From NCBI RefSeq assembly GCF_032191835.1, contig NC_083227.1, positions 166,842,001 through 166,906,000 on the forward strand: a DNA stretch of 64,000 nucleotides, written 5' to 3'. Positions 1,873 through 63,659 of the stretch are shown here, one piece after another (positions within the stretch are counted from its first letter, which is position 1; each line of letters begins with the position of its first letter). The translations under genes and the position numbers were made by a program. The notes under the pieces were generated by a model. That model was not told where the DNA came from, did no database searches, and saw only the letters and a list, made by a program, of their open reading frames with translations. The stretch is from Heteronotia binoei. Taxonomy: Eukaryota.

Positions 1873-2775
1873 TAGGGTTGCCAAGTCCAGTTCAAGAAAT
1901 ATCTGGGGACTTTGGGGTGGAGCCAGGTCCCAGGAGACTTTGGGGGCGGAGCCAGGAGACTTTGGGGGTGGAGCCAGGAGACATTGGGGTTGGAGCCAGG
2001 AGACTTTGGGGTGGAGCCAGGAGACTTTGGGGCGGAGCCAGGAGACTTTGGGGGCGGAGCCAGGAGACATTACGGTTGGAGCCAGGAGACTTTGGGGTGG
2101 AGCCAGGAGACTTTGGGGTGGAGCCAGGAGACTTTGGGGGTGGAGCCAGGAGACTTTGGGGGGGTGGAGCCAGGAGACATTAGGGGTGGAGCCAGGAGAC
2201 TTTGGGGTGGAGCCAGGAGACTTTGGGGGTGGAGCCAGGAGACATTAGGGGTGGAGCCAGGAGACTTTGGGGGTGGGGCCAGGAGACTTTGGGGTGGAGC
2301 CGGGAGACTTTGGGGGTGGAGCCGGGAGACTTTGGGGGTGGAGCCAGGAGACATTAGGGGTGGAGCCAGGAGACTTTGGGGGTGGAGCCAGGAGACATTA
2401 GGGGTGGAGCCAAGATCAAGGCTGTGACAAGCATCCTTGAACTCCAAAGGGAGTTCTGGCCATCACATTTAAAGGGACGGCACACCTTTTCAATGCCTTC
2501 CTTCCATAGGAAATAATGAAGGATAGGGGCACCTCCTTTTGGGGCTCATAGAATTGAACCCCCTGGTCCAATCGTTTTGAAACTTGTGGGATATTTTGGG
2601 GAGAGGCACTAGATGCTGTACTGAAAATTTGGTGCCTCTACCCCAAAAAACAGCCCCCCCCCAGAGCCCCCGATACCCGCAGATCAATTCTCCATTATTT
2701 TCTATGGGAATAAATCTCCATAGGGAATAACAGAGTTCCCAGCAGACATTTCCCTCTCCTCCTCCCGCTTTCTGA
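1873..2775. mobile_element. Non-autonomous hAT-type MITE (TAGGGTTGCCA termini) with an expanded ~21-bp VNTR (~24 units); far end truncated
   Basis: Starts tagggttgccaagtcc. (GGGGTGGAGCCAGGAGACTTT)n runs ~1905-2410, and the body matches the other copies listed. Confidence 0.85.
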
Positions 2776-2975
2776 ATCAGGGCTACCGTGTTTTGTTTTT
2801 AGTAATTATTTTAGCTCGGGATGGGTGCTTCGGAGCTTGTGCAAAACCCTATTTGGTTAAGAAGCTACCGGTAAAATACCTTTAACCGTGTAGCCATGTT
2901 GGTTATAAGCAACAGAACAAAGTTTGAGTCCAGTGGCAGATTTAAGAGCAATAAAGTTTAATTGTATGCCCACTT

Positions 2976-3324
2976 GGGGAGGGACGGTGGCTCAGTGGCA
3001 GAGCATCTGCTTGGGAAGCAGAAGGTCCCAGGTTCAATCCCTGGCATCTCCAACTAAAAGGGTCCAGGCAAATAGGTGTGGGAAACGTCAGCTTGAGACC
3101 CTGGAGAGCAGGGGAGGGACAGTGGCTCAGTGGCAGAGCATCTGCTTGGGAAGCAGAAGGTCCCAGGTTCAATCCCTGGCATCTCCAACTAAAAGGGTCC
3201 AGGCAAATAGGTGTGGGAAACGTCAGCTTGAGACCCTGGAGAGCCGCTGCCTGAGTAGACAAGGCTGACTTTGATGGACTGAGGGGGGTCTGACTCAGTA
3301 CAAGGCAGCTTCATATGTTCATAT
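2976..3324 (+). mobile_element. tRNA-derived SINE with a duplicated head and a CR1-like tail
   Basis: A-box tggctcagtggcag and B-box ggttcaatccc each occur twice; the tail ends gcagcttcatatgttc. Confidence 0.85.
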
Positions 3325-4559
3325 AAATAAATCTAACATATCAAATGTCTATACTTCTTCAGATACATTGAAACAGATGTCCTCAAGCCTTACATATAGG
3401 TAGAGAGCTGGAGGGGTTAGTTACAGTTAAGTTGCATAAGTAACTGAGCAATACCCAAAAAGTATAGCTAAGATTCGATTAAAGCCGTTGGTGAGACCTG
3501 TGAATAGCAGCAAATAAGCATACAAATAACAGAGTTAACAAACAGATGTGAGAACTAAGTTTGAGCCCAGTAGCACCATTAAAACCAATAAAGTTTAATT
3601 CTGGTATAAGCAAGAACTGAGTGACTCAGCATGTGTAGACGCACACTTCTTCGGATACATTAAAACAAACTTCCTCAAGTATTACATATATATAGATGGG
3701 AGGGTTAGTTGCTGGGAAGGGCTAATAACATCCCATTAAACCTCTGCTTAAAAGGTAGAATACTTTTCTCCAGGCTTGCTGACAAACTTATTTGTGAACA
3801 GGATGCTTATTTGACTGGGGAGAGATTGCCTGGGAAGACCCAAGAGTTAACTGTTATGTCCCACCCCCCCTTTTATGCCACCTGGAGAACTGCAAACAGC
3901 CTGCATTAGTTGCCTGGGGAAAGTCTTGGCCTTTGTGCCCTGATTGGCCACTATGTGAGACAGGAGGCTGGACTAGATGGGCTATTGAGCTGCTCTTATG
4001 AGATCTAACACTAGAAGGCCAAATCTTCAACATAGCCATAGAGATAGAATGAGAAGTTAAAGCAAGGCTATTGCTACCTATATGTGCCAGTCCAAGCAAA
4101 GGTATGATTTTGAAGGCAAGGGTACAAGTGTCCAGGCAGCAAATAATCCAACAGGGAGGAGAAGTAGCAGCTCACTGTGTCCAGAACAGGTACCTTCATA
4201 GCTACACAGTCTAGACTGCCTTAGTGCTATTTTCAAAAGTACACAGTCGGGATTTGAGCCTATGTAGGGCTCCAAATAGGCCCGGGGGGTGGGGAAGTCC
4301 TGTCCCTTTAATAAAGGCTTAATGTGTGGAAATTGTCCGCTGAAGTTTTTCATGGCATGGAAGTAAATAATATCACCTGGTAAATAACATCCCATTGAGC
4401 TCCTATTTAAAAAGGACAGGACTTTTTTTCTCCAGGCAATTGGCAGCCTTATCTACAACCTACTAAGTTCCCCTGAGAAAGCAAGAGATCTTGAACCTAC
4501 CAAGCGCTCCAGCCAGTTTACAGGAGTCTGTCTCTTCTCTCTCCATAGGAGCATCAGTT

Positions 4560-5022
4560 TAAGTTTATTTCAGTTTATATCCCGCCCTTCCCACCGAAGT
4601 GGCTCAGGGTGGCTCACAACATATAAAATCTAACATAGAATTTTAAATTTAAAATACATCAATTACAACAGTTAAAACGGTAAAATAATAAAACATTTAA
4701 ACAGCGATCTATCAAAATACCACACTGAACCTTCTATAGAATTTCTAATGCCAGTTAATTATAGGCCAGCCGGAAAAGGGCTGTCTTACAGGCCCTGCGG
4801 AACTGGCCAAGGTCCCGCAGGGCCCTCACCTCTTCTGGCAGCTGGTTCCACCAGCAAGGAGCCGTTACAGAGAAGGCCCTGTCCCTGGTGGATTTCAGAC
4901 GGGCCTCCTTTGGCCCGGGGATAGCAAGCAGATTTTGAGAGCCCTATCTCAGTACTCTCTGGGGAACATGTGGGGAGAGACGGTCCCTAAGGTAGGCAGG
5001 TCCTAGGCCATATAGGGCTTTA
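4560..5022 (-). mobile_element. L2 LINE 3' fragment
   Basis: Tail tatcccgccc...ctcagggtggctcac and decayed ORF2 C-terminus match the L2 at 27-29 kb. Confidence 0.8.
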
Positions 5023-7925: not shown

Positions 7926-7926
7926 A

Positions 7927-7994
<68 letters not shown>

Positions 7995-11741: not shown

Positions 11742-12421
11742 TAGGGTTGCCAATCCCCAGGTGGGGGCAGGGGATCCCCCGGTTTGGAGGCCCTCCCCGG
11801 GCTTCAGGGTCGTCAGAAAGCGGGAGGAGGGGACGGAAATGTCTGCTGGGAACTCTGTTATTCCCTAGGGAGATTTATTCCCATAGAAAATCATGGAGAA
11901 TTGATCCGCGGGTATCCGGGGCTCTTGGGGGGGTTGTTTTTTGGGGTAGAGGCACCAAATTTTCAGTATAGCATCTAGTGCCCCTCCCCAAAATAACCCC
12001 CCCCCCATGTTTCAAAAAGATTGGACCAGGGGGTCCAATTCTATGAGCCCCAAAAGAAGCTGTTTTTTGAGATAGAAGCACCAAACTTTCCATATAGTAT
12101 CCAGTGCCTCTTCCCTAAATACTCTCCAAGTTTCAAAAAGATTGGACCAGGGGGTCCAATTCTATGAGCCCCAAAAGAAGGTGCCCCTATCCTTCATTAT
12201 TTCCTATGGAAGGAAGGCATTGAAAAGGTGTGCCGTCCCTTTCAATGTGATGGCCAGAACTCCCTTTGGAGTTCAACGATGCTTGTCACAGCCTTGCTCT
12301 TGGCTCCACCCCCAAAGTCTCCTGGCTCCACCCCCAAAGTCTCCTGGCTCCACCCCCCAAAGTCTCCTGGCTCCACCCCCAAAGTGCCCAGGTATTTCTT
12401 CAATGGGACTTGGCAAGCCTA
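11742..12421. mobile_element. VNTR-bearing hAT MITE, complete, reverse orientation
   Basis: Terminal inverted repeats at both ends; 8-bp TSD ccgagaac / ccgagacc; ~4 VNTR units. Confidence 0.9.
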
Positions 12422-13000
12422 CCGAGACCGATGAGAGCCGAGACGGAGCCCAACGTTTGGGAGGGCAGCTCGCAAGGCGCCGCCACCGTTGGAGCCCCGC
12501 AAAAGCCAGCTGATCGCCCTCGGTGCGAAAGAGCAGCAGCGCGGAGGAGCAGCCACGAAGCCGGGGGCCCAGGCAGGCAGGCTCCCCCTTTTGGCCGTCG
12601 AGCATCGCCTGTCTCGGCCGACAGGCGGCGGGGGCGTGGTCAGATATTTGCATAATCTGGTCTCTTGCAGCAGCAGCAGGCGGCGGCGGCGGCTGGGCTC
12701 TCTGCCTGCGAGGCGGAGCGTGGCGCTAAGCGGCGGCAGGGGCAGAGAGCGGGGCTGCGGGGAGGGGAAGCAGAGGACACGCGCGGCACCGTCGCTTCGC
12801 CAGCCTCGCATCGCAGGGGATTCCAGGGGCGCCGGAGCGGGTAAGCGAGCGCTGCTCACGCCCAAAGACACGGCTGCGGCTTCAGCGTGGGGCTCGGGTG
12901 CTCCGAGGCAGAGGATGGGAAGGACACAGACCAATAAGGTCCCCACCTCGCAGCACCTTGCAATCCAACACAAGCCCCGCGGAGGAGCGGGAAGACGAGG
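12422..13000 (+). promoter_or_regulatory. CpG island with a probable non-coding first exon (ends at 12840), likely of RTBDN
   Basis: GGGGCGTGG box ~12630, octamer palindrome 12641-12660, (GCA)4(GCG)n leader, donor CGG|GTAAGC at 12840/12841. The next strong + acceptor with an ATG is at 26636. Linkage to RTBDN is inferred. Confidence 0.6.
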
Positions 13001-13001: not shown

Positions 13002-13950
13002 GCATCTGAAGCTGCCTTCTGCTGAATCAGACCCTTCTTGGTGCATCGAAGTCAGTCTTGTCTTCTCAGACTGGCAGCGGCTCTCCAGGGTCTCAAGCTT
13101 GAGGTTTTTCACACCTACTTGCCTGGACCCTTTTTAGTTGGAGATGCCGGGGATTGAACCTGGGACCTTCTGCTTACCAAGCAGATGCTCTGCCACTGAG
13201 CCACCGCCCCTCCCCTAACTGGCAGCGGCTCTCCAGGGTCTCAAGCTTGAGGTTTTTCACAGCTATTACCTGGACCCTTTTTAGTTGGAGATGCCAGGGA
13301 TTGAACCTGGGACCTTCTGCTTACCAAGCAGATGCTCTACCACTGAGCCACCGTCCCTCCCCTAACTGGCAGCGGCTCTCCAGGGTCTCAAGCTTGAGGT
13401 TTTTCACAGCTATTACCTGGACCCTTTTTAGTTGGAGATGCCAGGGATTGAACCTGGGACCTTCTGCTTATCAAGCAGATGCTCTACCACTGAGCCACTG
13501 TCCCTCCCCTAACTGGCAGCGGCTCTCCAGGGTCTCAAGCTTGAGGTTTTTCACAGCTATTACCTGGACCCTTTTTAGTTGGAGATGCCAGGGATTGAAC
13601 CTGGGACCTTCTGCTTACCAAGCAGCTGCTCTACCACTGAGCCACCGTCCCTCCCCTAACTGGCAGCGGCTCTCCAGGGTCTCAAGCTTGAGGTTTTTCA
13701 CAGCTATTACCTGGACCCTTTTTAGTTGGAGATGCCAGGGATTGAACCTGGGACCTTCTGCTTACCAAGCAGATGCTCTGCCACTGAGCCACCGTCCCTC
13801 CCCTAACTGGCAGCGGCTCTCCAGGGTCTCAAGCTTGAGGTTTTCACGCCTATTTACCTGGACCCTTTTGAGTTGGAGATGCCAGGGATTGAACCTGGGA
13901 CCTTCTGCTTACCAAGCAGATGCTCTGCCACTGAGCCACTGTCCCTCCCC
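13002..13950 (-). mobile_element. tRNA-derived SINE with six tandem 147-bp head units
   Basis: Unit starts at 13071, 13219, 13366, 13513, 13660 and 13807; a single tail at 13002-13070. This explains the repetitive 270-aa ORF. Confidence 0.92.
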
Positions 13951-16273: not shown

Positions 16274-16827
16274 TAGGGTTAAGTCCAATTCAAGAAATAT
16301 CTGGGGACTTTGGGGGTGGAGCCAGGAGACTTTGGGGGTGGGGCCAGGAGACTTTGGGGTGGAGCCAGGAGACATTAGGGGTGGAGCCAAGATCAAGGCT
16401 GTGACAAGCATAATTGAACTCCAAAGGGAGTTCTGGCCATCACATTTAAAGGGACAACACACCTTTTTAAATGTCTTCCTTCCATAGGAAATAATGAAGG
16501 ATAGGGGCACCCTCTTTTGGGGCTCATAGAATTGGACCCCCTGGTCCAATATTTTTGAAACTTGGGGGGTACTTTGGGGAGAGGCACTAGATACTATATG
16601 GAAAGTTTGGTGCCCCTATCTCAAAAAACAACTCCCCCAGAGCCCCAGATACCCGCGGATCAATTCTCCATGATTTTCTATGGGAATAAATCTCCATCGG
16701 GAATAATAGCGTTCCCAGCAGACATTTCCCTCCCCTCCCCTCCCCCCGCTTTCTGATGACCCTGAAGCGGGGGGAGGGCCTCCAAACCGTGGGATCCCCT
16801 GCCCCCACCTGGGGATTGGCAACCCTA
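16274..16827. mobile_element. VNTR-bearing hAT MITE, complete
   Basis: TIRs tagggtt.../...ggcaacccta; 8-bp TSD gaaggaac / gagggaac; 4 VNTR units. Confidence 0.9.
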
Positions 16828-23270: not shown

Positions 23271-23757
23271 TAGGGTTGCCAAATCCAATTCAAGAAATAT
23301 CTGGGGACTTTGGGGGTGGAGCCAGGAGAAAGGTTGTGTGTGGCAAGCATAATTGAACTCCAAAGGGAGTTCTGGCCATCACATTTAAAGGGACCGCACA
23401 CCTTTTAAATGCCTTCCTTTTGTTGGAAATAATGAAGGATGTGGGGCATCTTCTTTTGGAGCTCAAAGAATTGGACCCCCTGGTCCAATCTTTTTGAAAC
23501 TTGGGGGGTCTTTTGAAGAGAGGTGTTGGATGCCAAGTTGCAAATGTGGTACCTCTACCTCAAAAAACAGCCCCCCCCCAGAGCCCTAGATACCCTCGGA
23601 TCAATTCTCTGTTATTCCCAATGCGAATCAGTCTCCTTAGGGAATAATGAAGTGCCTAGCAGACATTCCCCCCTCCCCTGCTTTCTGATGACTCTGAAGC
23701 GAGGGGAGGGCCTCCAAACCTGGGGATTCCCTGCCCCCACCTGGGGATTGTGCAACT
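23271..23757. mobile_element. hAT MITE copy (1 VNTR unit) with an interrupted right end
   Basis: Starts tagggttgccaaatcc; the terminal motif reappears at 24260-24287. Confidence 0.8.
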
Positions 23758-25136
23758 CACAAAGGGAATCACGGCAAAAATAGACAGAGAAATCCAAAGC
23801 CCAAGGCTTTCCGTAAAGACCAGCCTCCGTATCAACATCAAACTTAATAAACAATACAAGAAAACACTTTTCAAGTGCCCTTCAGTATGATAATGGAATG
23901 GCGTTTTTTGCCCAGGGTATGAAAATATTGTTAAAAGGATTATTTGCAGCTTGAAGAAGCTTGGGCGAAACAAGGGTTCCAGTACGACCTTGTCTTCTCA
24001 ATTTTTGGAGTATTGGCTGCATATATTAAGAGATATTGATCATCGGTACAACTCTTTCACCAGGATTCTTTGGAATGAACTGAACAATTTGCCACAAAGA
24101 CTGGATTAATTCTTGGTGAACACGTTTCCTTTTGTGTTAAGGACTAATTGTATGGTCTTCTATGAAATAATATATGCTTATGTTTTCTTGTATTGTTTAT
24201 TAAGTTTGATGTTGATACGGAGGCTGGTCTTTACGGAAAGCCTTGGGCTTTGGGTTTCTCTGCCCACCTGGAGATTGGCAACCTTAATTTCTGTAGTGCT
24301 GGGTGATTTACTCTTCTTCCGTGGTGGAAGTGCTCAGATTGTAGAAAGTGTGTGAAAGATTTGAGGATGAGGGACCTGTGATGATCTGAGAACTGATCCA
24401 GAGCAGTTTATCAGGAAGCGGAAACCATGTAGAGTGGATTCTTCATAGAACCCCAACCTCCTTTCTAGGCTTTGATTTTTGTCCTGTGTCTGTATGATCC
24501 TCAGAGTATTTTGAAACCCACTTTCTACATTCTCCTCATGGATTAGAAATCCAGAAGGTAACTGACATATAGGAATTTGTCCAAAGCAGCACAGTGAGTC
24601 CTAGATAGTGGCTTAGCAGAGCTGATGTAGGACAGTCTGGTATAGTTGATAGGATTTGCTACATACGCCATCATGGAGCCACTTTATCTCTCTGTATTAT
24701 CTGTCTCCCTTAAATATCATCTAAGAGATGAAGCAATAAAGATAGTAGTTCAACCACAAACAGACCTATGAATAAAGTACAATGTGCGTGGCTGTAGGAT
24801 ACAAATTCAGCAATAATAACAATTTATTAATACACATTTATTGTGAAATAGCAAACAATAGTATACATGTGTTTAACTCTATAAAAATTTAAAGGTTTCC
24901 CTCTTCAAGCATGATGCATTAAGTGTAGCACTTCACTTTTTTTTTCCAGTGAGAGAGAACCCTAAAGTTGTGGCAATTCAGTTCTCATTTCTGCAAATTC
25001 AGTTCACAGTTCCAGATGGCTTGCCAGCTTCATTCCAGTTCTGAGTAGATCTTCATCAGAGTAATTCTTATCTTACAATTTCAAATAAAGTGCATCAATA
25101 TATTTTGAAGCTTCAAATGAGCAGCCATTATCTTTT

Positions 25137-26887: not shown

Positions 26888-28990
26888 TTATTTATTTATT
26901 TTATTCGATTTATATCCCGCCCTACCCCACCGAGGTGGGCTCAGGGCGGCTTACAACATAAAAGCTAACAAAGTCAGTTTAAAATACATTAATAATTATA
27001 CAATAAATACATAAGAACACATAAAACTCACTTCAATATGTACTATGCTACCTTTCCTTAAATAAATTCTTCAATATTCCAGTATTCAGTAATCTGTTGT
27101 TCGAGATTTGAATATTCAGGCATTCCGATAACAATTAATTATATGCCAACCGGAAGAGGGCTGTTTTGCAGGCCCTGCGGAACTGTTCAAGGTTCCGCAG
27201 GGCCCTCACCTCTTCCGGGAGCTGATTCCACCAACAGGGAGCTGCGATTGAAAAGGCCCTGTCTCTGGTCGCTTTCAGACGGGCCTCCTTTGGCCCAGGG
27301 ATTATAAGGAGGTTCTGAGACCCCGATCTCAGCACTCTCTGGGGAACATGTGGGGAGAGACGGTCCCTAAGGTAGGCAGGTCCCAGGCCACAAAGGGCTT
27401 TAAAGGTCATAACCAGCACCTTGTACCGAACTCGGTATGTTATCGGCAGCCAGTGCAGTCCCCGAAGCCCCGGCTGAATGTGCTCCCGTCTAGGGAGCCC
27501 TAACAACAGCCGGGAGCGGCATTCTGCACTAGCTGCAACTTCCGGGTTCGGTACAGGGGCAGCCCCATGTAGAGGGCATTGCAGTAGTCCAGCCTCGAGG
27601 TGACCGTTGCATGGATCACTGTTGCCAGGTCGCCGTCCTCCAGAAAAGGAGCCAACTGCCTTGCCCACCTAAGATGAAAAAATGCGGACTTGGCAGTGGC
27701 TGCTATCTGGGCCTCCATAGTTAGAGTAGGCTCCAATAGCACCCCCAGGCTCCTAACCCTGTGCGCCGCTGACAGAGGCACACCATCGAGGGCCGGTAAG
27801 GGAATCTCCCTCCCCGGACCACGGCGACCCAGGCAAAGGACCTCTGTCTTCGTCGGATTTAGCTTCAGCCCGCTCAGCTTGAGCCATCTAGATACGACCT
27901 GCAATGCCAGGTCCAGGTTTTCTGGGACACAGGCAGGCCGGCCGTCCATAAGTAGATAGAGCTGGGTGTCATCAGCATACTGGTGGCAACCCAGCCCGTA
28001 TCTCCAGGCAATCTGGGCAAGAGGGCGCATGTAGATGTTAAACAACATCGGGGATAGAACTGCTCCCTGAGGGATCCCGCAATCCAGCGGGTACCTCCGG
28101 GACAGTTCACCCCCAATCGCCACTCTCTGTCCCCGACCCTTGAGGAAAGAGGTAAGCCATTGTAGAGCCAACCCCTGAATCCCCACGTCGGCAAGATGGC
28201 AAGTCAGCAACCGATGGTCGACCGTATCGAACGCTGCCGATAGGTCTAACAACATCAGTACCACCGAGCCGCCTCGGTCCAGATGCCGCTGGAGATCATC
28301 CACTAGGGCAACCAGCACTGTCTCCGTCCCATGACCCGGGCGGAAGCCCGACTGATGGGAGTCAAGGACGGAAGCATCCTCCAGGAAACTCTGTAGTTGC
28401 AACGCCACTGCCCTCTCAATGAGTTTACCCAAAAAGAGTAAATTCGAGACCGGCCGATAGTGTGCCAATTCGGCCGGGTCCAATGTTGGTTTTTGAAGAG
28501 GGGGCGGACCACTGCCTCCTTAAGAGGTGTTGGAAATTGCCCTTCCATCAGGGATCTATTTATGATATCCCATACAGGATACCTAAGCTCCCTCTGGCAA
28601 GATTTAATAAGCCAGGAGGGGCACGGGTCCGAATTGCAAGTTGTAGGGCGTGAAGACAAGAGGATCCTGTCAACTTCCTCCAGGCTGAGAGCGCCGAAAC
28701 CATCCAGAATACAGTCTGAAGACAGGCAAGGAGCCTCGGGTTCACATACTGTCTCCAATATGGCGGGGGCGTCATGGCGGAGCGACGCGACTTTATCTGC
28801 AAAAAATTTCGCAAAAGCCTCACAGCCGATTTCCAATTGACTAGCGTTTGGGCTGCCCTGTGGCAGCGTTATAAGAGTCCGAATTGTGTTAAACAATTGT
28901 GCCGGGCGCGAAGTTGCAGACGCAATCCTAGCCGCAAAGTATGTTTTCTTTGCGGCTTTGACTGCCGCAAAAATAGATAAACAGATAAAA
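26888..28990 (-). mobile_element. Young 5'-truncated L2 LINE with RT domain and two frameshifts
   Basis: Motifs YRPVSNL, LDLSAAFDTVDH, PQGAVLSP and YADDTQLY lie in three overlapping ORFs (shifts ~28490 and ~27520). CpG-rich; TAAA tail. Confidence 0.93.
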
Positions 28991-29159
28991 ATGTGACTTC
29001 CAAAAGTGGACATTCTGATCAGAAACAGAACTCAACATAAGACTTGCTTAAACAGAACCACAGTTAACATCCTATGAGGAGAAAAGGTAGGGTGGCAATA
29101 GTCCATATTCTGCTGGTAGCCTATTCCAGAACATTGGCTCTACTACTGAAAAAGCCCTG

Positions 29160-36755: not shown

Positions 36756-37257
36756 GGGTTATCAATCCCCAGGTGGGGGCAGGGGATCCCCCAGTTTGGA
36801 GGGCCCCCCCCCGCTCCAGGGTCATCAGAAATTGGGGGAGAGGGAAATGTCTGTTGGGCACTCCGTTATTCCCTATGGAGACCAATTCCCATAGAGTATA
36901 ATGGAGAATTGATCAATGGGTATCTGAGGCTCTTGGGGGAGGCTGTCTTTTGAGGCAGAGATACCAAACTCTTAGCATAGCATCCAGTGCCTCTCCCCAA
37001 AATAGCCTCCCAAGTTTCAAAAGGACTGGACCAGGGGGTCCAATTCTATGAGCCCCAAAAGAAGGTGCCCCATCCTTCATTATTTCCAGTGGAGGGAAGG
37101 CTTTTAAAAGGTGTGCGGTCCCTTGAAATGTGATGGCCAGAACTCCCTTTGGAGTTCAATTATGCTTGTCCCAACCTTGCTCCTGGCTCCACCCCCAAAG
37201 TCTCCTGGCTCCACCCCCAAAGTCCCCAGATATTTATTGAATTGGACTTGGCAACCC
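36756..37257. mobile_element. hAT MITE copy, reverse orientation, 2 VNTR units
   Basis: Ends ttggcaaccct; body matches the family. Confidence 0.82.
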
Positions 37258-38048
37258 TCTACTCAGCAGCAGACATCTGTTTTGCATACAGAGGCCCTGT
37301 TCACACAGCGTGTTGAGTCTGTGTCAAACTGACCCGGTTCTGTTCCGAATTATCTTTGTTCCAGATATTATCGATCAGACTGCCATACTGCAATTTGAAT
37401 CACTCCGCACATGATGTGCTGATGTGCATATGCGCATGTGCATAGGTCAAAAAACATTATGTGGTTATGCGGGTATGTGCATATCGCAAAGTAGTAAAAA
37501 AAAAAAGATGACCATAAACTGGATGTCTGAGGCTCCTTTTGCTCTGGGACAGCCTTCAGACATCCAGAAGTTGGTTAATATTGTAGCAAAACTATCCAGA
37601 TGAAGAAAACTACGAGGTGAAACCAGACAACTCAAAAAACACCACAAAGGAGCAGGTAACAAAATAATCTGGTTTGGAGAAGGATTGGGGGGGGGGCCCA
37701 CAACGATTGACTACCGGGAGGCAGATGATGCTGTCTGATCAGCCACTTTTAATCCGGTAGGAAACAGCAGCGACAACTGATTAAACTGTGCGTCTGAACA
37801 GGGCCGCTATGTCTCAAGCTGCATTCACAGTATCTCCAGTTTAAACGGATCAGGTGATGGGAAAGACCTCTCCCTGCAGTCTTGGAGAACTGGTGCCAGT
37901 CAGAGCACTTCAGTACTAAGCTTGATAGACCAATGGTCTGAGTCACTAGAAGGCAGCTTCATGTGCTTATTAATGACAGACGATGTTGTCACAATGCAAA
38001 TGGGTCGGCTCAGTCCAGAAGGTGCTGAAAGAATGGTTCTTTTCACAG

Positions 38049-40287: not shown

Positions 40288-41208
40288 CTAGTATTTAAAG
40301 AAGTACTCTAAAAGAAAAGAGGGGTCATTAGAAATTCGGAATTGGCTATAGATGTTACGTAATTGAGTTTTTAATACTCTGTAGTCTTCAGTGAACCAAG
40401 AGTTAATGCCCCTATTCTTTTTAATAGAATGATTAGGTTTTATACTGAATGATTGAGAAAAATGGGAAATCAGAGTATTGTAAGCTGAGATCTTTGGTGT
40501 GGGATCCATGCTATCAATTATAGAGGCTCTAAGATCAGAAAAAGATCTGAGCTGAAGTTGAGATGTCACCTGCATAGAATGGTCATTCCATACAATTTTA
40601 GGTAGGATTTCTGGCCCAGAGGTCAAAGCAACAGGTGGATGGAAAGGGGCAGCGAAAAGGCTGGTTCTGAGTGTTAGGATCAGAGGCAGGTAGTCACTAA
40701 TAACAAAATCCCCAATCTCAAAGTTCAAAATGCAAGATTCCAAGAGAGGAGAAACTAGAAAGTAATCAATTACGTCACAACCTTTTATAGAAACAAAAGT
40801 GAATTTGCTGGCTTTAGGGAAACAGGTAAGTCCATTCAGCCATACTCTATTGAACTGAAAGCAAAATTTGGTGAGATGAATTATTGTAGCAATCTTTAAT
40901 CTCTCTGAGAAAAAGAGAGGGGGAAGGGTATCATTCTGATTGATTTCAAGAGCTCTGAAAAATATCAGGCGGTCCCTACCTACTCTCGCAATAAAATACC
41001 CAACAGAGGGAAATTTCCATTCTAATGTTCCCATAAAAATAGACATATGTTCCCAATGTTGTGAAGGGGCATGGCTATCTAGGGTAGGGGACACATATAG
41101 ATTAACCATAATCAAAATGGATCTTTCAAAGAGAAGTTTAACAGCTTGTTCTGAATAAGTAACATAGTAGCTGTACAGTTTAAATGTAAGGAAATAAAAA
41201 TAGCCCAA
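40288..41208 (-). pseudogene. Non-LTR retrotransposon APE endonuclease fragment, clade undetermined
   Basis: WLNG...FTFVS...VIDYFLVS...SDYLP resembles the APE C-terminus (IDY...SDH); the catalytic His is replaced by Tyr. Confidence 0.65.
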
Positions 41209-41819: not shown

Positions 41820-42261
41820 AAAGAAAAATTGGGGGGTACTTTGGGGAGCAGCACTAGATACTATACTGAAAATTTGGTGCCTCTACCTCAAAAAACAGCT
41901 CCCCCAGAGCCCCCGAAACCTCCAGATCAATTCCCCATTATACTCTATGAGAATCGATCTCCACATAGGGAATAATGAAGTGCTCAGCAGACGTTTCCCT
42001 CCCCCCCTCCCCCCGTTTCTGGCGAGTCTGAAGCAGGGGATTGGCCTCTCTACTCACAAGTTGCTGCCAACTTCTTCACAGCAGCACAGACACACCATCC
42101 CAAGAGGAAGCCTTTCAATCGGAGACTGAAGCCTTCGGAGGTGCAAAGGCACATGGTCCTCTGGGGGCGGGGCTTCCCCCCGCCGGCCAGCTGACTGGGG
42201 GCGGGAAGGAGCCTGGGAAAGCAGAAGAACTCCCGCTGAGACCTGGGGATTGGCAAGCCTA
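41820..42261. mobile_element. hAT MITE right-half fragment
   Basis: Family body ending ggggattggcaagccta. Confidence 0.7.
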
Positions 42262-42995
42262 AGTGGAGCCCAAAGCAGCTTATATTATTCCCTTCTCTGT
42301 TTTATCCTCATAACAACCCTGCAAGGTAGATTAGTCTAAGAGAGAGTGATTGTAGGGATTTGAACCTGGGGCTCCTGGATCCTGGGCAGACACTCTAATC
42401 ACTACACCACACAGGCTCTCAGTTTTCCCTCCCCCTGGCAGCCTCTCTCTGGGAAAAGTCCGGCCTAGTTGCAAATAGGTTTGCCAGGTCTGACTCAGTA
42501 AATATCTGGGGACTTTGATGGTGGAGCCAGGAGTAAGGTTGTGACAAGCACAACTGAATTCTGAAGGAAGTTCTGGCCATCACATTTAAAGGGACTGTGC
42601 TCCTGTGGTGCTAGCAACAGTTTTCTCCCAGATCAGCTGACTCAAAACATCAGAGCAAGACTAGGAGAACAATGGAAAAACTACTTCTGGTAGGCACAAT
42701 CAGCAATGGAGAAATGATAAAGGGAGGGATGGCTATTACGGTTAAGGGTTTTGGATTCTCCTTCCCTGTCACTTCTCCATTCCTGACTGGGCTCATGGGA
42801 AGCCGTTTTCCCATTTAAAGGCAACCTGCAGGCCACTGTTACAGCATTTGTCCCAGCAGCTCTAAGGAAAGAACAAATATCCTGTGTGGCTACTATATGT
42901 GCCTGTGAACAGCCTAGGTTAAGTGGCCACACTTTGTATTCTACCATGAAATTTCACCTGCCTTCCTTATTTCCCCATTCCGCCTCACCTCACAG

Positions 42996-43154: not shown

Positions 43155-43503
43155 CCCAGTTTGGTGTAGTGGTTAAGTGTGCGGACTCTTATCTGGGAGA
43201 ACCGGGTTTGATTCCCCACTCCTCCACTTGCACCTGCTAGCATGGACTTGGGCCAGCCAGAGCTCTGGCAGAGGTTGTCCTTGAAAGGGCAGCTGCTGGG
43301 AGAGCCCTCTCCAGCCCCACCCACCTCACAGGGTGTCTGTTGTGGGGGAGGAAGGTAAAGGAGATTGTGAGCCGCTCTGAGACTCTTCGGAGTGGAGGGC
43401 GGGATATAAATCCAATATCTTCTTCTTCTTCTTCTTCTTCTTCTTCTTCTTCTTCTTCTTCTTCTTCTTCTTCTTCTTCTTCTTCTTCCTCCTCCTCCTC
43501 CTC
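43155..43503 (+). mobile_element. SINE with L2-type tail and (TTC)n(CTC)n
   Basis: Same family as 32143-32475, inserted ~50 nt after the RTBDN exon 4 donor. Confidence 0.88.
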
Positions 43504-44579: not shown

Positions 44580-47310
44580 AGTAAATTTATATTTTACCCT
44601 GCCAATGGGCTCAGGGCTGATTACAACATAATTAAACAATTAAAACAATAACGTGACAACCAATAAAAACAATGCATAAAAACACTAGACTTCCTGGTTA
44701 CAGAGCAGGAGGCAAAATAATTCATAACAGTTTCAGCTGGCCAAAAATCCAAACAATGATAACTGGGCTGTTAGATGAAACCGTTCAGCACATTTCTGTA
44801 CATTTCAGTGTGCTACAATAAGGGAGCCGATCTGATTTAGCTTGGAAGTCCATTGCCTTAATTGAAGGCCTGGAAGAGCAGCTCCATCTTACAAGCCCTG
44901 CAAAACGGTAACAAATCCGGCAGGGCTCTAACCTCCAATGGGAGCATGTTCCGTGAGGCCCGCGGCCAGGGCAGAAAAAACCCTGGCCCTAGTCAAGGCT
45001 AGATGGGTGTCCTTAGGGCCGGGGACAACCAGCAAATGTTGGTTCTCTGAGTGTAGAGCCCTTCAGGGTACATACAGGGATAGGTGGTCCTCAGATATGT
45101 CAGTCAGTTTGGTGTAGTGGTTAAGTGTGCGGACTCTTATCTGGGAGAACCGGCTTTGATTCTCCACTCCTCCACTTGCACCTGCTGGAATGGCCTTGGG
45201 TCAGCCACAGCTCTGGCAGAAGTTGTCCTTGAAAGGGCAGCTGCTGTGAGAGCCCTCTCCAGCCCCACCCACCTCACAGGGTGTCTGTTGTGGGGGAGGA
45301 AGGCAAAGGAGATTGTGAGCCGCTCTGAGACTCTTCGGAGTGGAGGGCGGGATATAAATCCACTATCTTCATCTACCTCACAGGGTGTCTGTTGTGGGGG
45401 AGGAAGGGAAAGGAGATTGTGAGCCGCTCTGAGACTCTTCGGAGTGGAGGGCGGGATATAAATACAATATCTTCATCTACCTCACAGGGTGTCTGTTGTG
45501 GGGGAGGAAGGCAAAGGAGATTGTGAGCCGCTCTGAGACTCTTCGGAGTGGAGGGCGGGATATAAATCCAATATCTTCATCTACCTCACAGGGTGTCTGT
45601 TGTGGGGGAGGAAGGGAAAGGAGATGGTGAGCCGCTCTGAGGCTCTTCGGAGTGGAGGGCGGGATATAAATCCAATATCTTCATCTACCTCACAGGGTGT
45701 CTGTTGTGGGGGAGGAAGGGAAAGGAGATGGTGAGCCGCTCTGAGGCTCTTCGGAGTGGAGGGCGGGATATAAATCCAATATCTTCATCTACCTCACAGG
45801 GTGTCTGTTGTGGGGGAGGAAGGGAAAGGAGATGGTGAGCCGCTCTGAGGCTCTTCGGAGTGGAGGGCGGGATATAAATCCAATATCTTCATCTACCTCA
45901 CAGGGTGTCTGTTGTGGGGGAGGAAGGTAAAGGAGATTGTGAGCCGCTCTGAGACTCTTCGGAGTGGAGGGCGGGATATAAATCCAATATCTTCATCTAC
46001 CTCACAGGGTGTCTGTTGTGGGGGAGGAAGGTAAAGGAGATTGTGAGCCGCTCTGAGACTCTTCGGAGTGGAGGGCAGGATATAAATCCAATATCTTCAT
46101 CTACCTCACAGGGTGTCTGTTGTGGGGGAGGAAGGTAAAGGAGATTGTGAGCCGCTCTGAGACTCTTCGGAGTGGAGGGCGGGATAGAAATCCAATATCT
46201 TCTTCTTCAGTCCCAGGTTGCACAGGGCTTTGAAAGTCAATACCAAAACCTTGAAGCGAATCCAATGCAAATGGCATCGCGCTGGTCGGATACATGCCCG
46301 CACAGGCAATGCCATCAACAGGGGTGCCGCCACATTTTGCACCAGCTGGAGCTTCTGGATTAACTCCAAGGGCAAGCCCACATAGAGCGAGTTACAGTAG
46401 TCCAGTCTGGAAGTGACCATTGCGTGGGTCACTGTAGCGAAGTCCTGAGGGAGAGATCGGGTGCCAGCTGCCTAATCTGTTGAAAGTAACAAAAGGCCAA
46501 CTTGGCAACTGTCGTGACCCGGGCCTCCGTAGAAAGTGAGGCATCCAGGATCACTCCCAGGCTCTTCACCTGGGCTGGCACAAGAGGTGTGCTATCCAGG
46601 TCTGGTAGCCTGATACCCTGAGCTACTCCACTACAGGACCTCTGTCTTCGTTGAATTAAGCTTCAGATGACTCTGCTGCAACTACCCAGCCACGGCCCCC
46701 AGTGCCTCATCGGATGATCTGGGGTGGAGTCCAGACAACCATCCATCGACAGATAGAGCTGGATGTCATCTGTATACTGGTGACAACCCAACCCAAATCC
46801 CGAGGCTAACTGGGTGAGGGGGTGGATATAGATGTCGAAAATCATTGGTGAGAGAATTGCTTCCTACAGCACACCACGTTCAAGTGGCTATCGCGGGGAA
46901 ACCTCCTCGCAAAGCACCACCCTCTGTCCCCAACCATGGAGAAAGGAGGAAAGCCACTGTAAGCCAAAGCCCTGAACTCCTATATCGCAAGGCGGTGGGT
47001 CTTGAGGTCATAGTTGACTGTGTCAAATGCTGCTGTCAGATCTAAAACCAACAGCAGCCCTGACCCATCTCAATCCAGGTGTCTCTGGAGGTCATCTGTG
47101 AGGGCAAGTAATGCAGTCTCTGTTCTGTGGCCTGGGCAGAAGCTGGACTGGACTGGATCAAGGATAGATTCCTCCTCCAGGAAGGCCGGAAGCTCTTCAG
47201 GCACCACCTTCCCAACTATCTTGCCCAGAGGAATGGAAGGTTAGACACTGGGCGGTAGTTGGTGGACCCATAGGATCCAGTGTTGGTTTTTTCAAAAAGC
47301 GGACGAATCA
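44580..47310 (-). mobile_element. Older L2 split by a nested SINE array
   Basis: L2 sequence resumes at 46210 after the insertion; short target duplication (c)agtc. Confidence 0.75.
45105..46209 (+). mobile_element. SINE with nine tandem 104-bp tail units
   Basis: Unit starts at 45271, 45375, 45479, 45583, 45687, 45791, 45895, 45999 and 46103. Confidence 0.92.
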
Positions 47311-48422: not shown

Positions 48423-48855
48423 CAGGGTTGCCAATCCCCAGCTGGGGGCAGGGAATCCCCTGGTTTGGAGTCGCTCCCCCCATTCAGGGTTATCAGAAAA
48501 TGGGGGGGAGGGGCTGAATATCCACTGGGCACTCCATTATACCCTATGGAGACCTCTTCCCATAGGGTATAATGGAGAATTGATCTGTGGGTATCTGGGA
48601 CTTGGGGGGGGGCATCTGGTGCCTCTCCTAAAAAAAACCCCCACATTTCAAAAAGATTGGACCAAGGGGTCCAGTTCTGTGAGTTCCAAAAGAAGGTGCC
48701 CCTATCCTCCATTACTTCCAATGAAGGGAAGGCATTTAAAAGGAGCACCATCCCTTTAAATGTGACGGCCGGAACTCCCTTCAGAGTTCAATCATTCTTG
48801 TTACAAGGGCTCCTGGCTGCACTGCCCAAGTCCCAAGCAGGATCTGGCAACCCTA
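48423..48855. mobile_element. hAT MITE copy without the VNTR
   Basis: cagggttgccaatcccc...gatctggcaacccta. Confidence 0.8.
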
Positions 48856-49949
48856 AGAATGCAGAGATTGCAGAAGTTGAAAACAACAGGTGAGGCAATT
48901 GCTGCTGGGCAGGAGGAGTCTTGCCCAACTGCTTACATGACTTCAGATACTGTGAGACCAGTCAAAAGGGGGGGGAAAGCCTTCGCTATTTGAGTTCAGC
49001 ATGGAGGCAGCAGGCACTGACTAGAGAAACTTCTGGCCAGTAGGTGGAGCCAGAGAGCTACATAGTTGGCCAAGCAAAGCCATCGCCTGACTAGCAGGAG
49101 CTTTTCATGCAACTCAGACGTGAGCAGAGACAAGACTGTGAAATTGATAGATTGCTAGTAGCTATTACTGTGCAGCACTTGAGTCAGGAAAAGCAAAGTT
49201 TCAAGCACTGTGTATAAAATGCACAGCACCCTATTAGAAGCGATGCCATGTGTTGTTTGTTCTAAATTAGCAACAAAGGCCGTAAGCAGTGTTCCCTCTA
49301 AGCTGAGTTAGTGTGAGCTAGCTCAGTTTTTTAGACTCCGTCTCACACATTTTTGTCTTAGCTCAGGAAAAATGACCTCAGAGCAAGCTAATTTATGCAG
49401 CAGCACACAACTTTAATGCCAGAAGCTCACAAAGAAGAATTTTTCCTCACAAGACTCCACAGCCTAGAGCAGGGGGGTGGGGAACCTATTTTCTGCCAAG
49501 GGCCATTTGGATATTTATAACATCATTTGTGGGCCATACAAAATTATCAACTTAAAAAACAGTGTTCCAAGGGAGAACGATTCAGGCCAGCAAAATTAAT
49601 GCAAATAATTGTTTTTCTATTTGAAGTTATGTGGGGCAAGCCTAATTTTGCGTACCTCCCCCCCCCACCCCACCCCAGCCTGCCACCCTAGGTAAATGCC
49701 TAGGTTCAAGGCTTTTTTTTGTAGAAAAAGTCCAGCAGGAACTCATTAGCATATTAGACCACATCCCCTAGAATTAGCATATTAGGCCACACCATCTGGG
49801 ATAATCATGTGCAAATTGAACTGGAGGTAGCTGGCTCCCACTCCCCACTCCAGCCACCTCTCCCTCCAGAAACTGGAGCTGCTCCCAGCAGACCTTTAAA
49901 GGCACCCACATACCCCAGCAGCAGTCCTTCACAATGCCCACTAAGGTTC

Positions 49950-53119: not shown

Positions 53120-53605
53120 GCTGGTTTGGTGTAGTGGTGAAGTGTGCGGACTCCTATCTGGGAGAACCGGGTTTGATTCCCCACTCCTCCACTTGCAGCT
53201 GCTGGAATGGCCTTGGGTCAGCCTTATCTCTGGTAGGAGTTGTCCTTGAAAGGGCAGCTGCTGTGAGAGCCCTCTCCAGCCCCACCCACCTCACAGGGTG
53301 CCTGTTGTGGGGGAGGAAGGGAAAGGAGATTGTGAGCCGCTCTGAGACTCTTCGGAGTGGAGGGCGGGATATAAATCCAATATCTTCATCTACCTCACAG
53401 GGTGCCTGTTGTGGGGGAGGAAGGGAAAGGAGATTGTGAGCCGCTCTTAGACTCCTTGGAGTGGAGGGCGGGATATAATCCAATATCTTCATCTACCTCA
53501 CAGGGTGCCTGTTGTGGGGGAGGAAGGGAAAGGAGATTGTGAGCCGCTCTTAGACTCCTTGGAGTGGAGGGCGGGATATAAATCCAATATCTTCTTCTTC
53601 TTCTT
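53120..53605 (+). mobile_element. SINE with three tandem ~104-bp tail units
   Basis: Unit starts at 53288, 53392 and 53495; same junction as the 45-kb array. Confidence 0.9.
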
Positions 53606-54258: not shown

Positions 54259-54544
54259 GGGCGTTTTTGCACTGACCTTAATCAGCAGCGACGCCCCTCT
54301 TCACCACACAGGATCGGCGCGGATTTCGCACTAATTGCCGCGGAGCACCCGGAAGAGCCGGAAAGTCCCGCGGCTTTTGCGGCGCAAATGTTAACTGGTT
54401 TTTGGCGGTTTCCGTTTGCGCCGCAAAAGCCGCGGGACTTTCCGGCTCTTCCGGGTGCTCTGCGGCAATTAGTGCGAAATCCGCGCCGATCCTGCGCAGT
54501 GAAGAGGGGCGTCGCTGCTGATTAAGGTCAGTGCGAAAACAGCC
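54259..54544. mobile_element. 286-bp near-perfect palindromic MITE (PIF/Harbinger-like)
   Basis: ~130-bp arms, ~26-nt loop, 3-bp TSD TGA (54256-54258 and 54545-54547), CpG-rich. Confidence 0.85.
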
Positions 54545-55547
54545 TGAGAGTCAAAAGGGAAAACAGGTGCTTTAGCAGGCAGACCTTCTTGCCTCAAGGA
54601 GATAGCACTGGATTCCTGCTCCCACCTAACTCAACTCAGGGGAAAGTAGCATGGCTGCCCATTAAGCTCCTTTTAGAACTGCTTGCCTGCCTGCCGAAGT
54701 CAGGCTGAAAAGAAAGGAAGTGATGCAGTCAGCGCTCTTTGGCTCAAGCAGGGAGCTCCCTGGAGGAGGCAGCTGCCCTTCCCAAGAGCACTGAGAACCA
54801 GAGAGGAGAGTCCTGTGGCACTAATGAGTCTTGCCTGAACTTTGCAGAACCTGAGCCAGGGCAGATCATCAGTGATCAGAGAGTGTGGCATGCAGGAGCA
54901 CAAAGGCAAACCACCCGTAGAGCCGTAATACGTATTTATTATTCATTTACTTCACCGATCCCCTGCCCTTTTCCCTACTGGGGACCCAACGTGGCTTACA
55001 TCGTTCTCTTCTCCATTTTATCCTCACAAAAAAACCTGTGGGGGAAGTTAAACTGAGTGTGTGTGACTAGTCCAAGGCCTCTCAGCAAGCACCCATGGTA
55101 GCACAGGGATTCAAACCTGGGTCTCCAGATCCGAGGCAGAAACTTTAACCGCTAGACCAGAATGGCTTGATTTAAGGGAAGGAATCTCCCAGGTGAGCAG
55201 GTCTGCTGTGTATCTTAAATCATTCTTCCCTCCTACCCCCTCTCAGCTCTTCCACTTAAACAGAACCTAAAACTTTCAACCCAGGTTTTTTCCTGCCTCT
55301 GTGATAACTCACCGCCAGTCACACTGAGGACACTGTTGTGCTATAGATTTTCTGCCCTGTAGCTTCCAGATCAAAAGGCTGCCTCGCTGTCTGTCTGCAA
55401 AATTATCTCCCAAAAGCAGAAAGAAGCCCTGACTCACCACTGTTTACAGCAGCAGCAGTTTCCTGCTAAGCTCCAGGGTCTCTTCACCCTCCAACCCAAA
55501 GCGACATTCACTGCCCCAAAGTCCTGTCCTTCTTGCCTCCCACCTAC

Positions 55548-58888: not shown

Positions 58889-59015
58889 CGCTGCTGCATG
58901 CTAGTAGAGATGAAATTGGGGGAGAGGATATGCAGAGCCCAGCCTACATAATCCTTGGCTGCGTTCAGTTGCTCAAAGAGTTGCTCCCGCTGAGCCTCTG
59001 TCAGTGTCTTGGAGT
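58889..59015 (-). CDS. RNASEH2A: RNASEH2A exon 3
   Basis: ttttcag|AC...CG|gtgagc, 127 nt, DSKTLTEAQREQLFEQLNAAKDYVGWALHILSPNFISTSMQQ(R); contains the DSK motif. Confidence 0.97.
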
Positions 59016-59197: not shown

Positions 59198-59269
59198 CTG
59201 CTACTTTCAGAGTTTGCAGATCTCCCTGCCGGGCCAGAGGACAGTAACATATTCCATATACCATAGGAC
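59198..59269 (-). CDS. RNASEH2A: RNASEH2A exon 2
   Basis: cccag|GT...G|gtaaag, 72 nt, GPMVYGICYCPLARQGDLQTLKVA(D). Confidence 0.97.
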
Positions 59270-61007: not shown

Positions 61008-61357
61008 GGGGAGGGACAGTGGCTCAGTGGTAGAACATCTGATTGGGAAGCAGAAGGTCCCAGGTTCAATCCCCGGCATCTCCACTAAAAAAGGGTCCAG
61101 GCAAATAGGTGTGAAAAACCTCAGCTTGAAACCCTGGAGAGCAGGGGAGGGATGGTGGCTCAGTGGTAGAACATCTGCTTGGTAAGCAGAAGGTCCCAGG
61201 TTCAATCCCTGGCATCTCCAAAAAAGGGTCCAGGCAAATAGGTGTGAAAAACCTCAGCTTGAGACCCTGGAGAGCTGCTGCCAGTCTGAGTAGACAATAC
61301 TGACTTTGATGGACCAAGGGTCTGATTCAGTATAAGGCAGCATCATATGTCCATATG
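61008..61357 (+). mobile_element. tRNA-derived SINE, dimeric head
   Basis: Two heads joined at ccctggagagc|aggggaggga. Confidence 0.88.
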
Positions 61358-61556
61358 CATTCTCCAAGCTGCCAGCTGGCTTGGCGAAGCGATTTAAAGA
61401 GAGGAATGCCTTCTCCAAGCCAGCCAGCCAATGGGGGCTTCAAGAGCCACACCATACGCGTGAAAGAGCCACAGTTTGGCCACCCCTGTGCAATACGGAT
61501 CCTTTTAAAAACGCCCCGAGGAGTCTCCCCTTCCTTCCGCGCAATCAAGCCCCTAC

Positions 61557-61683
61557 CCAGCACCGGGCCCCTGCCTGCCTCGTCAATGCCCAGGCTGCAG
61601 AGCTCGCGCCGGCAAACGGGCGGCACCGCGGAGTCCACCGAGCAGTTCGCCGCATTGTCCCGCTCGAAGGCGCCCAGCTCCAT
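61557..61683 (-). CDS. RNASEH2A: RNase H2 catalytic subunit A, exon 1
   Basis: [42 protein letters not shown](G), with the catalytic DEAGRGP motif; 127 nt; donor G|gtaggg. Confidence 0.97.
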
Positions 61684-61825
61684 CTTCGCGCGCGCGCCCT
61701 CGGAACGCAGGACGGGAAACGCGCTCCGAAAGCCTGGAGAGCACTGCCTTCTGGGAAGCGGAGTTCGCGCTCACGGCCCCCATGAGCGGCTTCAGACTTG
61801 CATTCCGGCCTGCATGAAAAAGGTC

Positions 61826-62452
61826 GCATCAATGCATGATGCTGCGCTACGGCAAGAAGAAAATAGCCCCGGTTTCCGCTCCCAATTCTTGAACTCGCAC
61901 ATATTGGCCCAGAATTCGAATAGTAAGATGAAGGCACAAAACCAGAGTTGCAATTGTTCTCATTCCCGACGTTTTAAACCTCATTGCAATTGCTTTATTA
62001 ACACATGCTCGCAAACAATCATCAGAGGCTATTTCTTATGCTCCGGATGAGCAGCTTCAAAGCTGCATCCCGACCTGGATTAAAAAAAAAAGGTTCCTGG
62101 CGTTTCCATCAATTAATGATACTGTGCTATCGCAAGAAGAAAATAGCCCCGGTTTCCGCTCCCAATTCTTGAACTCACACATACTGGCCCAGAATTCGGA
62201 TAGTAAGATGAAGGCACAAAACCAGAGTTGCAATTGTTCTCATTCCCGACGTTTTAAACCTCATTGCAATTGCTTTATTCACGCATGCTCGCAAACAATC
62301 ATCAGAGGCTCTTTCTTATGCTCCGGATGAGCAGCTTCAAAGCTGCATTCCGACCTGGATATAAAAAAAAAGGTTGCTGGCGTTTCCATCAATTAATGAT
62401 ACTGTGCTACGGCAAGAAGAAAATAGCCCCGGTTTCTGTTCCCACTTCTTGA
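61826..62452. repeat. 280-bp tandem duplication (~2.2 copies) upstream of the RNASEH2A ATG
   Basis: gcaagaagaaaatagccccgg occurs at 61852, 62132 and 62412. Confidence 0.92.
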
Positions 62453-62885
62453 AAAGTCCTGCGAAAGAGCGCCAGAAGCACAGCCCGCGGCTCGGGAATA
62501 ATTTTAATTGGATATGCCACAAGTGACTTTATGGCTATGGCATAAAGCGTGGCGGAGGACACTGAACGCTCCACTGTTTCAACATGTTGGTTACTCGCGT
62601 CAGTAATAAATTCTGCAGTCTTGTGTTTTCATGGGGAATGGCCCATTCTCCCCTGCAGCAAAGCTCCCCTGCCTTTGACGGACAGAAATTCAACAGGCGT
62701 ATTTTTCTCGCGGCATGCACACGCGATATGCAATGGGACCTTCACCATCCCACCGTTATATAACTGAGAGTCGCACACCCGCTGCATTTTGCATTCGGGA
62801 AGCGGCTCCAGCACGTGGGCGCCGTTAAAATAAGTTTGGGGTATGATTGCCATCTTTGTTGATGGAAGAGGAAAATCCAAGAAGG

Positions 62886-63659
62886 TAGGGTTGGGGGCAG
62901 GGGATCCCCCGGTTTGGAGGCCCTCCCCCGCTTCAGGGTCCTCAGAAAGCAGGGGGAAGGGAAATGTCTGCTGGACACTCCATTATTCCTTAGGGAGATT
63001 TATTCCCATAGAAAATAATGGAGAATTGATCCGCGGGTATCTGGGGCTCTGGGGGGGGGCTGTTTTTGAGGTAGAGGCACCAAATTTTCTGCATACCATC
63101 CAACGCCTCTTCCCTAAATACCCTCCAAGTTTCAAAAAGATTGGACCAGGGGGTCCAATTCTATGAGCCCCCAAAGAAGGTGCCCCTATCCTTCATTATT
63201 TCCTATGGAAGGAAGGCATTGAAAAGGCGTGCGGTCCCTTTAAATGTGAGGGCCAGAACTCCCTTTGGAGTTCAATGATGCTTGTCACAGCCTTGATCTT
63301 GGCTCCACCCCCCCCAAAGTCTCCTGGCCCCACCCCCCAAAGTCTCCTGCCCCCCCAAAGTCTCCTGGCCCCACCCCCAAAGTCTCCTGGCCCCACCCCC
63401 CAAAGTCTCCTGCCCCCCAAGTCTCCTGGCCCCACCCCCAAAGTCTCCTGGCCCCACCCCCCAAAGTCTCCTGGGCCCACCCCCCCAAAGTCTCCTGGTC
63501 CCACCCCCAAAGTCTCCTGGCCCCCCCCCAAAGTCTCCTGGCCCCACCCCCCCAAAGTCTCCTGGCCCCACCCCCAAAGTCTCCTGGCTCCACCCCTAAA
63601 GTCTCCTGGGCCCACCCCCAAAGTCCCCAGATATTTCTTGAATTGGACTTGGCAACCCA
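62886..63659. mobile_element. VNTR-bearing hAT MITE, reverse orientation, ~15 VNTR units
   Basis: Family body; (ccccaaagtctcctggccccacc)n ~63300-63625; ends ttggcaaccca. Confidence 0.88.

Follow-up and report, generated by a model that had tools for sequence, protein, structure and literature searches.

The hAT transposon TcBuster prefers transcription start sites and CpG islands for its insertions and Hermes prefers nucleosome-free DNA (PMC3499496), and the surviving old insertions of DNA transposons are most frequent just upstream of start sites, as those within genes have been purged (PMC7337890). Here, we describe a miniature inverted-repeat transposable element (MITE) of the hAT type in a 64-kb window of the genome of the gecko Heteronotia binoei (assembly GCF_032191835.1, contig NC_083227.1, positions 166,842,001 to 166,906,000; the window is the whole stretch analysed, 64,000 nucleotides, and all coordinates below count from its first letter). 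Three copies of this MITE abut CpG islands, and two of the three carry long tandem arrays of a G-rich 22-bp unit. An initial annotation had placed the element upstream of all three promoters that it recognised and had explained this either by oriented targeting or by co-option of the arrays. Our analysis points to a known kind of event as the probable explanation, namely hAT insertion at gene starts together with local growth of minisatellites beside CpG islands.

The MITE resembles TcBuster, Hermes and Ac/Ds in where its copies are found, as the insertions of those elements are enriched at gene 5′ ends (PMC3499496) and older ones survive just upstream of start sites (PMC7337890). The observations differ in kind, however. 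De novo insertions were measured for TcBuster, Hermes and Ac/Ds, whereas the MITE copies are old, fixed and from one window, so that landing preference and selection are inseparable here. Among squamates, the Anolis families hobo_AC, hobo-N and hAT-N share with the MITE an 8-bp target duplication, short ends beginning TAGG and the absence of coding sequence, and the Anolis non-autonomous hAT families are likewise far more numerous than autonomous elements (PMC3014272). The nearest published inverted end that we found, TAGGCTTGMTC of Anolis hobo_AC (PMC3014272), resembles the MITE terminus TAGGGTTGCCAA; it is closer still to TAGGCTTGCCAA, the end of a second element that is nested in one of the MITE copies. 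By sequence, the MITE nevertheless belongs to a different family, and its 22-bp subterminal unit, with the arrays that grow from it, is a feature of its own. Minisatellites have 0 occurrences in the Anolis hAT paper, where 'tandem' is used only in an unrelated sense (PMC3014272).

The arrays themselves have parallels in primates. Human promoter minisatellites also consist of G/C-rich units of ~12–22 bp with SP-type motifs and lie a few hundred base pairs upstream of housekeeping promoters, as in the variable number tandem repeat (VNTR) with Sp1 sites at XRCC5 (listed in the references of PMC8096271) and in the repeat upstream of CSTB. By comparison, the MITE unit is transposon-derived and is arrayed at two unrelated promoters. 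The SVA elements of apes offer a second parallel, since there, too, a unit inside a mobile element has expanded separately at different insertions. SVA, however, is a retroposon with the VNTR in its mobile unit, whereas most MITE copies have 1–4 units and the long arrays are local and arose after insertion.

A hAT MITE with a subterminal 22-bp unit

Searching the window with the copy at 12 kb (c2) as the query recovered 8 MITE copies and 1 small fragment, or about 1 copy per 8 kb. The body of the element is ~545 bp long with 4 units, is non-coding and has 12-bp inverted ends, and the G-rich 22-bp unit lies near one of these ends, usually in 1–4 repeats. Four copies (c1, c2, c4 and c9) form a young subfamily with 90–94.5% pairwise identity and a baseline of 4 units; the older copies c5 to c8 show 78–86% identity and have 1–2 units. 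The window contains an unfilled assembly gap (34573–34773), which makes the number of copies and their spacing minimum values. No copy lies closer than 2 kb to this gap, and the three junctions with CpG islands are in uninterrupted sequence more than 20 kb from it; MITE sequence and signs of continuity are both absent from its flanks.

The initial annotation had called the element a hAT MITE, and this identification held. Target duplications of 8 bp, identical at 7 of 8 positions, flank both copies whose two ends are intact: CCGAGAAC/CCGAGACC at c2 (11742–12425, + strand) and GTTCCCTC/GTTCCTTC at c4 (16281–16827, − strand). These are the only two copies where target duplications could be read, as they were not recoverable for c1, which is truncated, or for c9. 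Set against the hAT target consensus nTnnnnAn, each of these two duplications fits one of its two positions. Both ends of c2, c4 and c6 start with TAGGGTTGCCAA, giving the short terminal inverted repeats beginning YAG that are expected of hAT elements. The length below ~800 bp, the lack of coding sequence, the many copies, the inverted ends and the target duplications are those of a MITE. No matching autonomous element with a hAT transposase is present within the 64-kb window. Reads of three RNA runs stack on c9 with loose ends that are discordant past both element ends, and the family must therefore be very abundant and embedded in many transcripts.

We rejected a role of the 22-bp unit as a subterminal transposase-binding repeat that matches the other MITE end: the match is 13/15, but 37 of 500 shuffles equalled it.

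Three young copies lie in the shoulders of CpG islands

Scanning the window for islands yielded ten CpG-rich blocks, four of which are non-transposon: 1457–1870, 12426–13000, 61451–61826 and 63660–64000 (islands 1 to 4). As the initial annotation had described, three MITE copies stand beside such islands. The ends of c1 (1871–2775, − strand), c2 and c9 (62886–63659, + strand) each fall within ~5 bp of islands 1, 2 and 4, respectively, as CpG-rich blocks with an observed/expected CpG ratio (o/e) of 0.79–0.90. Judged as CpG islands over at least 200 bp, the three have a GC content of 0.66–0.70 and an o/e of 0.66–0.85. The end with the 22-bp repeat faces the island in all three copies, and the spacing from the element end to the promoter motifs is similar: 170–258 bp to the cAMP response element (CRE) and ETS motifs of island 1 (1613–1701), 207–221 bp to the GC box (12632) and octamer (12646) of island 2 and 209 bp to the TATAAA of island 4 (63868). 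Islands 1, 2 and 4 are called promoters by their motifs only.

Two parts of the earlier description were not confirmed. The fourth island, island 3 (61451–61826, − strand), which the initial annotation had not counted, contains the promoter and exon 1 of RNASEH2A and is the only promoter in the window with RNA support; no MITE copy abuts it, the far end of c9 being ~1 kb off, and so the element does not sit at all promoters of the window. The claimed upstream position is also uncertain for c1. Over 1401–1900, the sign of the GC skew changes near 1650, from about −0.4 to +0.4, with the CRE/CCAAT/ETS cluster of island 1 at the centre. Because this flip is like that of a bidirectional promoter, c1 may be downstream of a start site that points rightward and not upstream of one that points leftward. 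In island 2, GC skew is positive over 12600–12800.

CpG-rich DNA is found on both sides of these three copies. On the far side of c1, c2 and c9, CpG o/e is 0.70–0.86 over 150 bp, compared to 0.00–0.62 over 300 bp on each side of the five other copies (at most 0.26 on 8 of 10 sides). Therefore, the three copies are insertions into the shoulders of islands and not markers of island edges. The suggestion that they form an island boundary fails for the same reason, since CpG richness goes on beyond each copy and the copies themselves are CpG-poor (o/e of 0.25–0.36). With the copies removed, 4.8–6.4% of window positions are equally CpG-rich, and 3 of the 8 copies are located there (P = 0.005–0.011, for a CpG-shoulder criterion that was set after inspection of the data). 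The direction of this local enrichment fits the measured behaviour of hAT elements. We also used CpG retention as an indicator of hypomethylation in the promoter-adjacent copies; only 5 sites were usable, and their retention follows the age of the copy and not its position.

The long arrays grew independently after insertion

The unit counts given in the initial annotation stood with small changes. The array of c1 (~1899–2412) has 23 units instead of ~24, c9 has 15 units (63310–63625) and c2 has 4 (12297–12385). The remaining copies, for which 0–4 units had been claimed, have 4 (c4, a young copy away from islands), 1 (c5; 23271–23760, − strand), 2 (c6; 36753–37260, + strand), 1 (c7; 41825–42600, − strand) and ~1 degenerate unit (c8, the oldest copy; 48424–48856, + strand). 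The far end of c1 is short by ~72 bp, and the far inverted end of c9 has a 14-bp deletion. Copy c7 is interrupted by a nested insertion of ~430 bp that combines a piece resembling a short interspersed element (SINE) with an element that has a closely related inverted end, TAGGCTTGCCAATCCCCAGGT, and an interior rich in GC boxes.

These differences in unit number are between copies in the window, and the contrast between long and short arrays is confounded with age, because the young subfamily has a baseline of 4 units and the older copies have 1–2. Among the four young copies, the two expanded ones (c1 and c9) both abut islands; of the two unexpanded ones, c2 abuts an island and c4 is distant (P = 0.5).

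The composition of the arrays is more informative about their origin. In c1, units of the TAAT and AAA types make up a 3-unit block that is repeated with a period of 65, and in c9 a GGCCCC unit type, the majority variant of this copy, is repeated with a period of 45. The four-unit copy c4 holds the unit types of both arrays. As different ancestral units were amplified in c1 and c9, the two arrays grew independently, after insertion, by duplication of several units at a time. Many RNA reads of other copies skip 241–307 bp of the c9 array, indicating that typical copies elsewhere have short arrays. A further tandem event has occurred in the interior of c2, also an island-adjacent copy, where a 121-bp segment is duplicated (11935–12180, 84% identical).

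Unrelated tandem arrays lie beside the same islands

Tandem arrays that are not part of the MITE border the islands as well. A 306-bp fold-back satellite (1–1456), which continues past the window edge, touches island 1. Six tandem copies of a 147-bp tRNA-SINE unit (13070–13950) begin 70 bp from island 2. Island 3 is touched by 2.2 tandem copies of a 280-bp repeat (61827–62453), ~140 bp upstream of the 5′ end of the RNASEH2A contig, and a dimer of the 147-bp tRNA-SINE unit (61008–61285) lies in RNASEH2A intron 1, ~165 bp from the same island.

Six of the nine arrays of at least 240 bp are located within 250 bp of an island, as compared to 0 of 50,000 random placements. For the non-MITE arrays alone, the count is 3 of 6 (P = 0.0005). 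Across three transposon families, 5 of 6 near-island copies are expanded, compared to 2 of 12 distant copies (P = 0.013). Since unrelated arrays occur at the islands, the MITE arrays look like one instance of a general tendency for expansion beside CpG islands. Human VNTRs show a similar enrichment, both in CpG islands and in the 1 kb that precedes genes (PMC8096271). Squamate recombination is elevated at promoter-like features (PMC10369914), which may be a cause of such expansion.

SINE-derived sequence was also seen at greater distances from the islands. Another SINE dimer (2976–3251) is ~1.1 kb from an island, and single SINE units distant from islands (at 20065 and 57858) are unexpanded. 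A 104-bp SINE-tail unit occurs in single copies at 32407–32475 and 43418–43488, each of which is followed by a perfect (TCT)23 run.

Weighing the explanations

The probable explanation, hAT insertion at gene starts with local minisatellite growth beside CpG islands, would proceed in the following way. The hAT transposase would prefer open, nucleosome-poor DNA at gene starts, and copies would land in island shoulders. Insertions into a core promoter or first exon would then be lost, and surviving copies would accumulate ~200 bp out from the core elements. A landing preference combined with such a selection filter would leave the ~200-bp distance to core motifs that we measured. Any tandem-prone sequence beside a CpG island would tend to expand locally, with the c1 and c9 arrays as one case; plausible causes of the expansion are stress from replication or transcription, or the repair of breaks at recombination hot spots associated with promoters.

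Several observations weigh against this explanation. Copy c2 abuts an island yet keeps 4 units. Association with islands is found in 3 of 4 young copies and in 0 of 4 older copies (P = 0.14), and it may be that the landing preference is specific to the young subfamily or that the association is chance. Two large arrays of the 104-bp SINE-tail unit are located far from islands (45271–46206, 9 copies; 53288–53598, 3 copies). The island borders beside the arrays are partly defined by the arrays themselves, and all statistics come from one 64-kb window with thresholds picked after seeing the data. Finally, the recombination or repair cause and the selection filter are steps that we infer.

The more likely lesson of the window is mutational: CpG-island flanks in this genome seem to gather cut-and-paste insertions and to amplify whatever tandem-prone sequence arrives. 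This tendency matters for the annotation of promoters and for the study of recombination and repair hot spots in squamates.

Pure chance would produce the same picture if an abundant family happened to have three island neighbours in one orientation, two of them with long arrays, and the coincidence was noticed after the fact. The density of the family (1 copy per 8 kb here), the P-values for orientation (0.25) and for array length within the young subfamily (0.5), and the use of a single window with post hoc criteria are all compatible with such a coincidence. We nevertheless consider it unlikely, as 3 of 8 insertion points have CpG-rich DNA on both sides, which holds for only ~5% of the window (P = 0.005–0.011), and as the preference of hAT elements for start sites has been documented independently (PMC3499496, PMC7337890).

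The shared orientation of c1, c2 and c9 could have a cause of its own. Either the transposase complex would target promoters in an oriented manner, or arrays would expand only if their G-rich strand served as non-template during divergent transcription away from the promoter. For transcription from island to element, the G-rich strand would be the non-template one in each of the three copies. However, a shared orientation in 3 of 3 copies has a P-value of only 0.25, c2 has the same orientation and is unexpanded, and divergent transcription was not observed. Integration of cut-and-paste hAT elements is not known to be oriented. Consequently, a cause of this kind seems quite improbable to us, and the common orientation of the three copies is most likely chance. 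The initial annotation had proposed oriented targeting of promoter nucleosome-free regions; the targeting is supported locally (P of ~0.005–0.01) and matches the published behaviour of hAT elements, while the orientation is not supported.

Similarly low is the probability of co-option, whereby selection would have kept or expanded an array of SP/KLF-like GT and GC boxes, possibly with G-quadruplexes, that acts either close to the promoter, with an effect tuned by copy number, or as a boundary of the island. The arrays do contain candidate motifs at ~200 bp from the core motifs. The arrays hold 12–18 GGGGTGG motifs, to which c1 has added 3 GGGCGG cores. Copy c9 contains 7 GGGTGGGG motifs, and its quadruplex-type motifs (loops of up to 12) number 5, compared to one in c1. 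Human promoter VNTRs with Sp1 sites also exist, to judge from the references of PMC8096271. On the other side, the promoter copy c2 has stayed at the baseline of 4 units, the quadruplex motif is strong in c9 alone, and the copies are CpG-poor inserts inside CpG-rich DNA and not at its edge. Moreover, non-MITE arrays that lack such motifs occupy the same positions, subfamily age confounds the comparison of array lengths, and no RNA was seen from the promoter beside c9 in three runs sampled at ~6% each. We rejected the G-quadruplex idea in particular, as c9 is the only copy in which the canonical motif is common.

The broadest form of this proposal is that, genome-wide, MITE copies at CpG-island promoters preferentially point the end with the 22-bp unit towards the promoter and are selectively expanded into SP/KLF-type arrays that modulate output or chromatin. 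We hold this to be very unlikely. If it were true, a transposon would have supplied the gecko, at many housekeeping genes, with a promoter module whose effect is tuned by copy number. If the local pattern extended across the genome, it would be a clear case, in a vertebrate, of a DNA transposon that seeds expandable arrays of transcription factor sites at promoters, and the differing unit numbers would form a natural series in which the effect of such arrays could be tested.

That the islands are cargo, CpG-rich blocks carried or captured by the transposon and not native promoters that were hit, can practically be dismissed, because the c2 target duplication lies directly at both element ends and leaves the island outside, island 3 contains the real RNASEH2A exon 1, and the islands have no similarity to one another or to other MITE copies.

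Genes and other features of the window

RNASEH2A is represented by a spliced RNA contig with exons at 61555–61689, 59198–59267 and 58889–59015 (− strand), and Pfam shows weak RNase_HII matches in two exons. Island 4 (63660–64000, + strand), with TATAAA at 63868, continues past the window end. It has no RNA support: read depth is ~0 at 63801–64000 beside the TATAAA in the same three runs, where most placed reads are 95–99% window-like and a short GCT-repeat run is present, so that this result is not decisive. By synteny, the gene of island 4 may be PRDX2. A folate-receptor-like gene of the RTBDN type, identified with Pfam, is located at 38–48 kb on the + strand.

Island 1 contains, in addition to the CRE and ETS motifs, an inverted CCAAT box and two GC boxes. 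Island 2 (+ strand) has a donor-like GTAAGC at 12841. To identify the genes of these two islands, we looked for kinase, PDZ, zinc-finger and MAST N-terminal motifs and found none. Pfam searches of 20 open stretches returned only RNase_HII, Folate_rec and reverse transcriptase matches, none of which names a gene for island 1 or 2; the exons were searched singly by reference. From the human gene order, MAST1 would be the expected neighbour here, but it is not evident, as kinase and MAST N-terminal motifs occur nowhere in the window. No recognisable coding exon was found in the ~25 kb from island 2 to the first folate-receptor-like exon (13000–38000).

At the right edge of island 1, a short ATG-led frame (1838–1877) stops exactly at the start of the c1 end. 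The junction between island 1 and c1, AGG|GTAGGG, resembles a splice donor, and from its sequence the MITE end could supply a donor to a rightward transcript.

Several of the non-promoter CpG-rich blocks are due to remnants of long interspersed elements (LINEs) at 27.1–29 kb and 40.3–41.2 kb. The first of these (27100–29050, − strand) has an RVT_1 match (E = 4e-35). The second (40291–41208, − strand) is a 306-codon open frame that has no Pfam match and reads like the N-terminal part of the second open reading frame of a LINE (ORF2). In a further CpG-rich block (54259–54550), both strands encode a near-identical peptide; the block is an inverted duplicate, or fold-back, and probably a transposon rather than a promoter.

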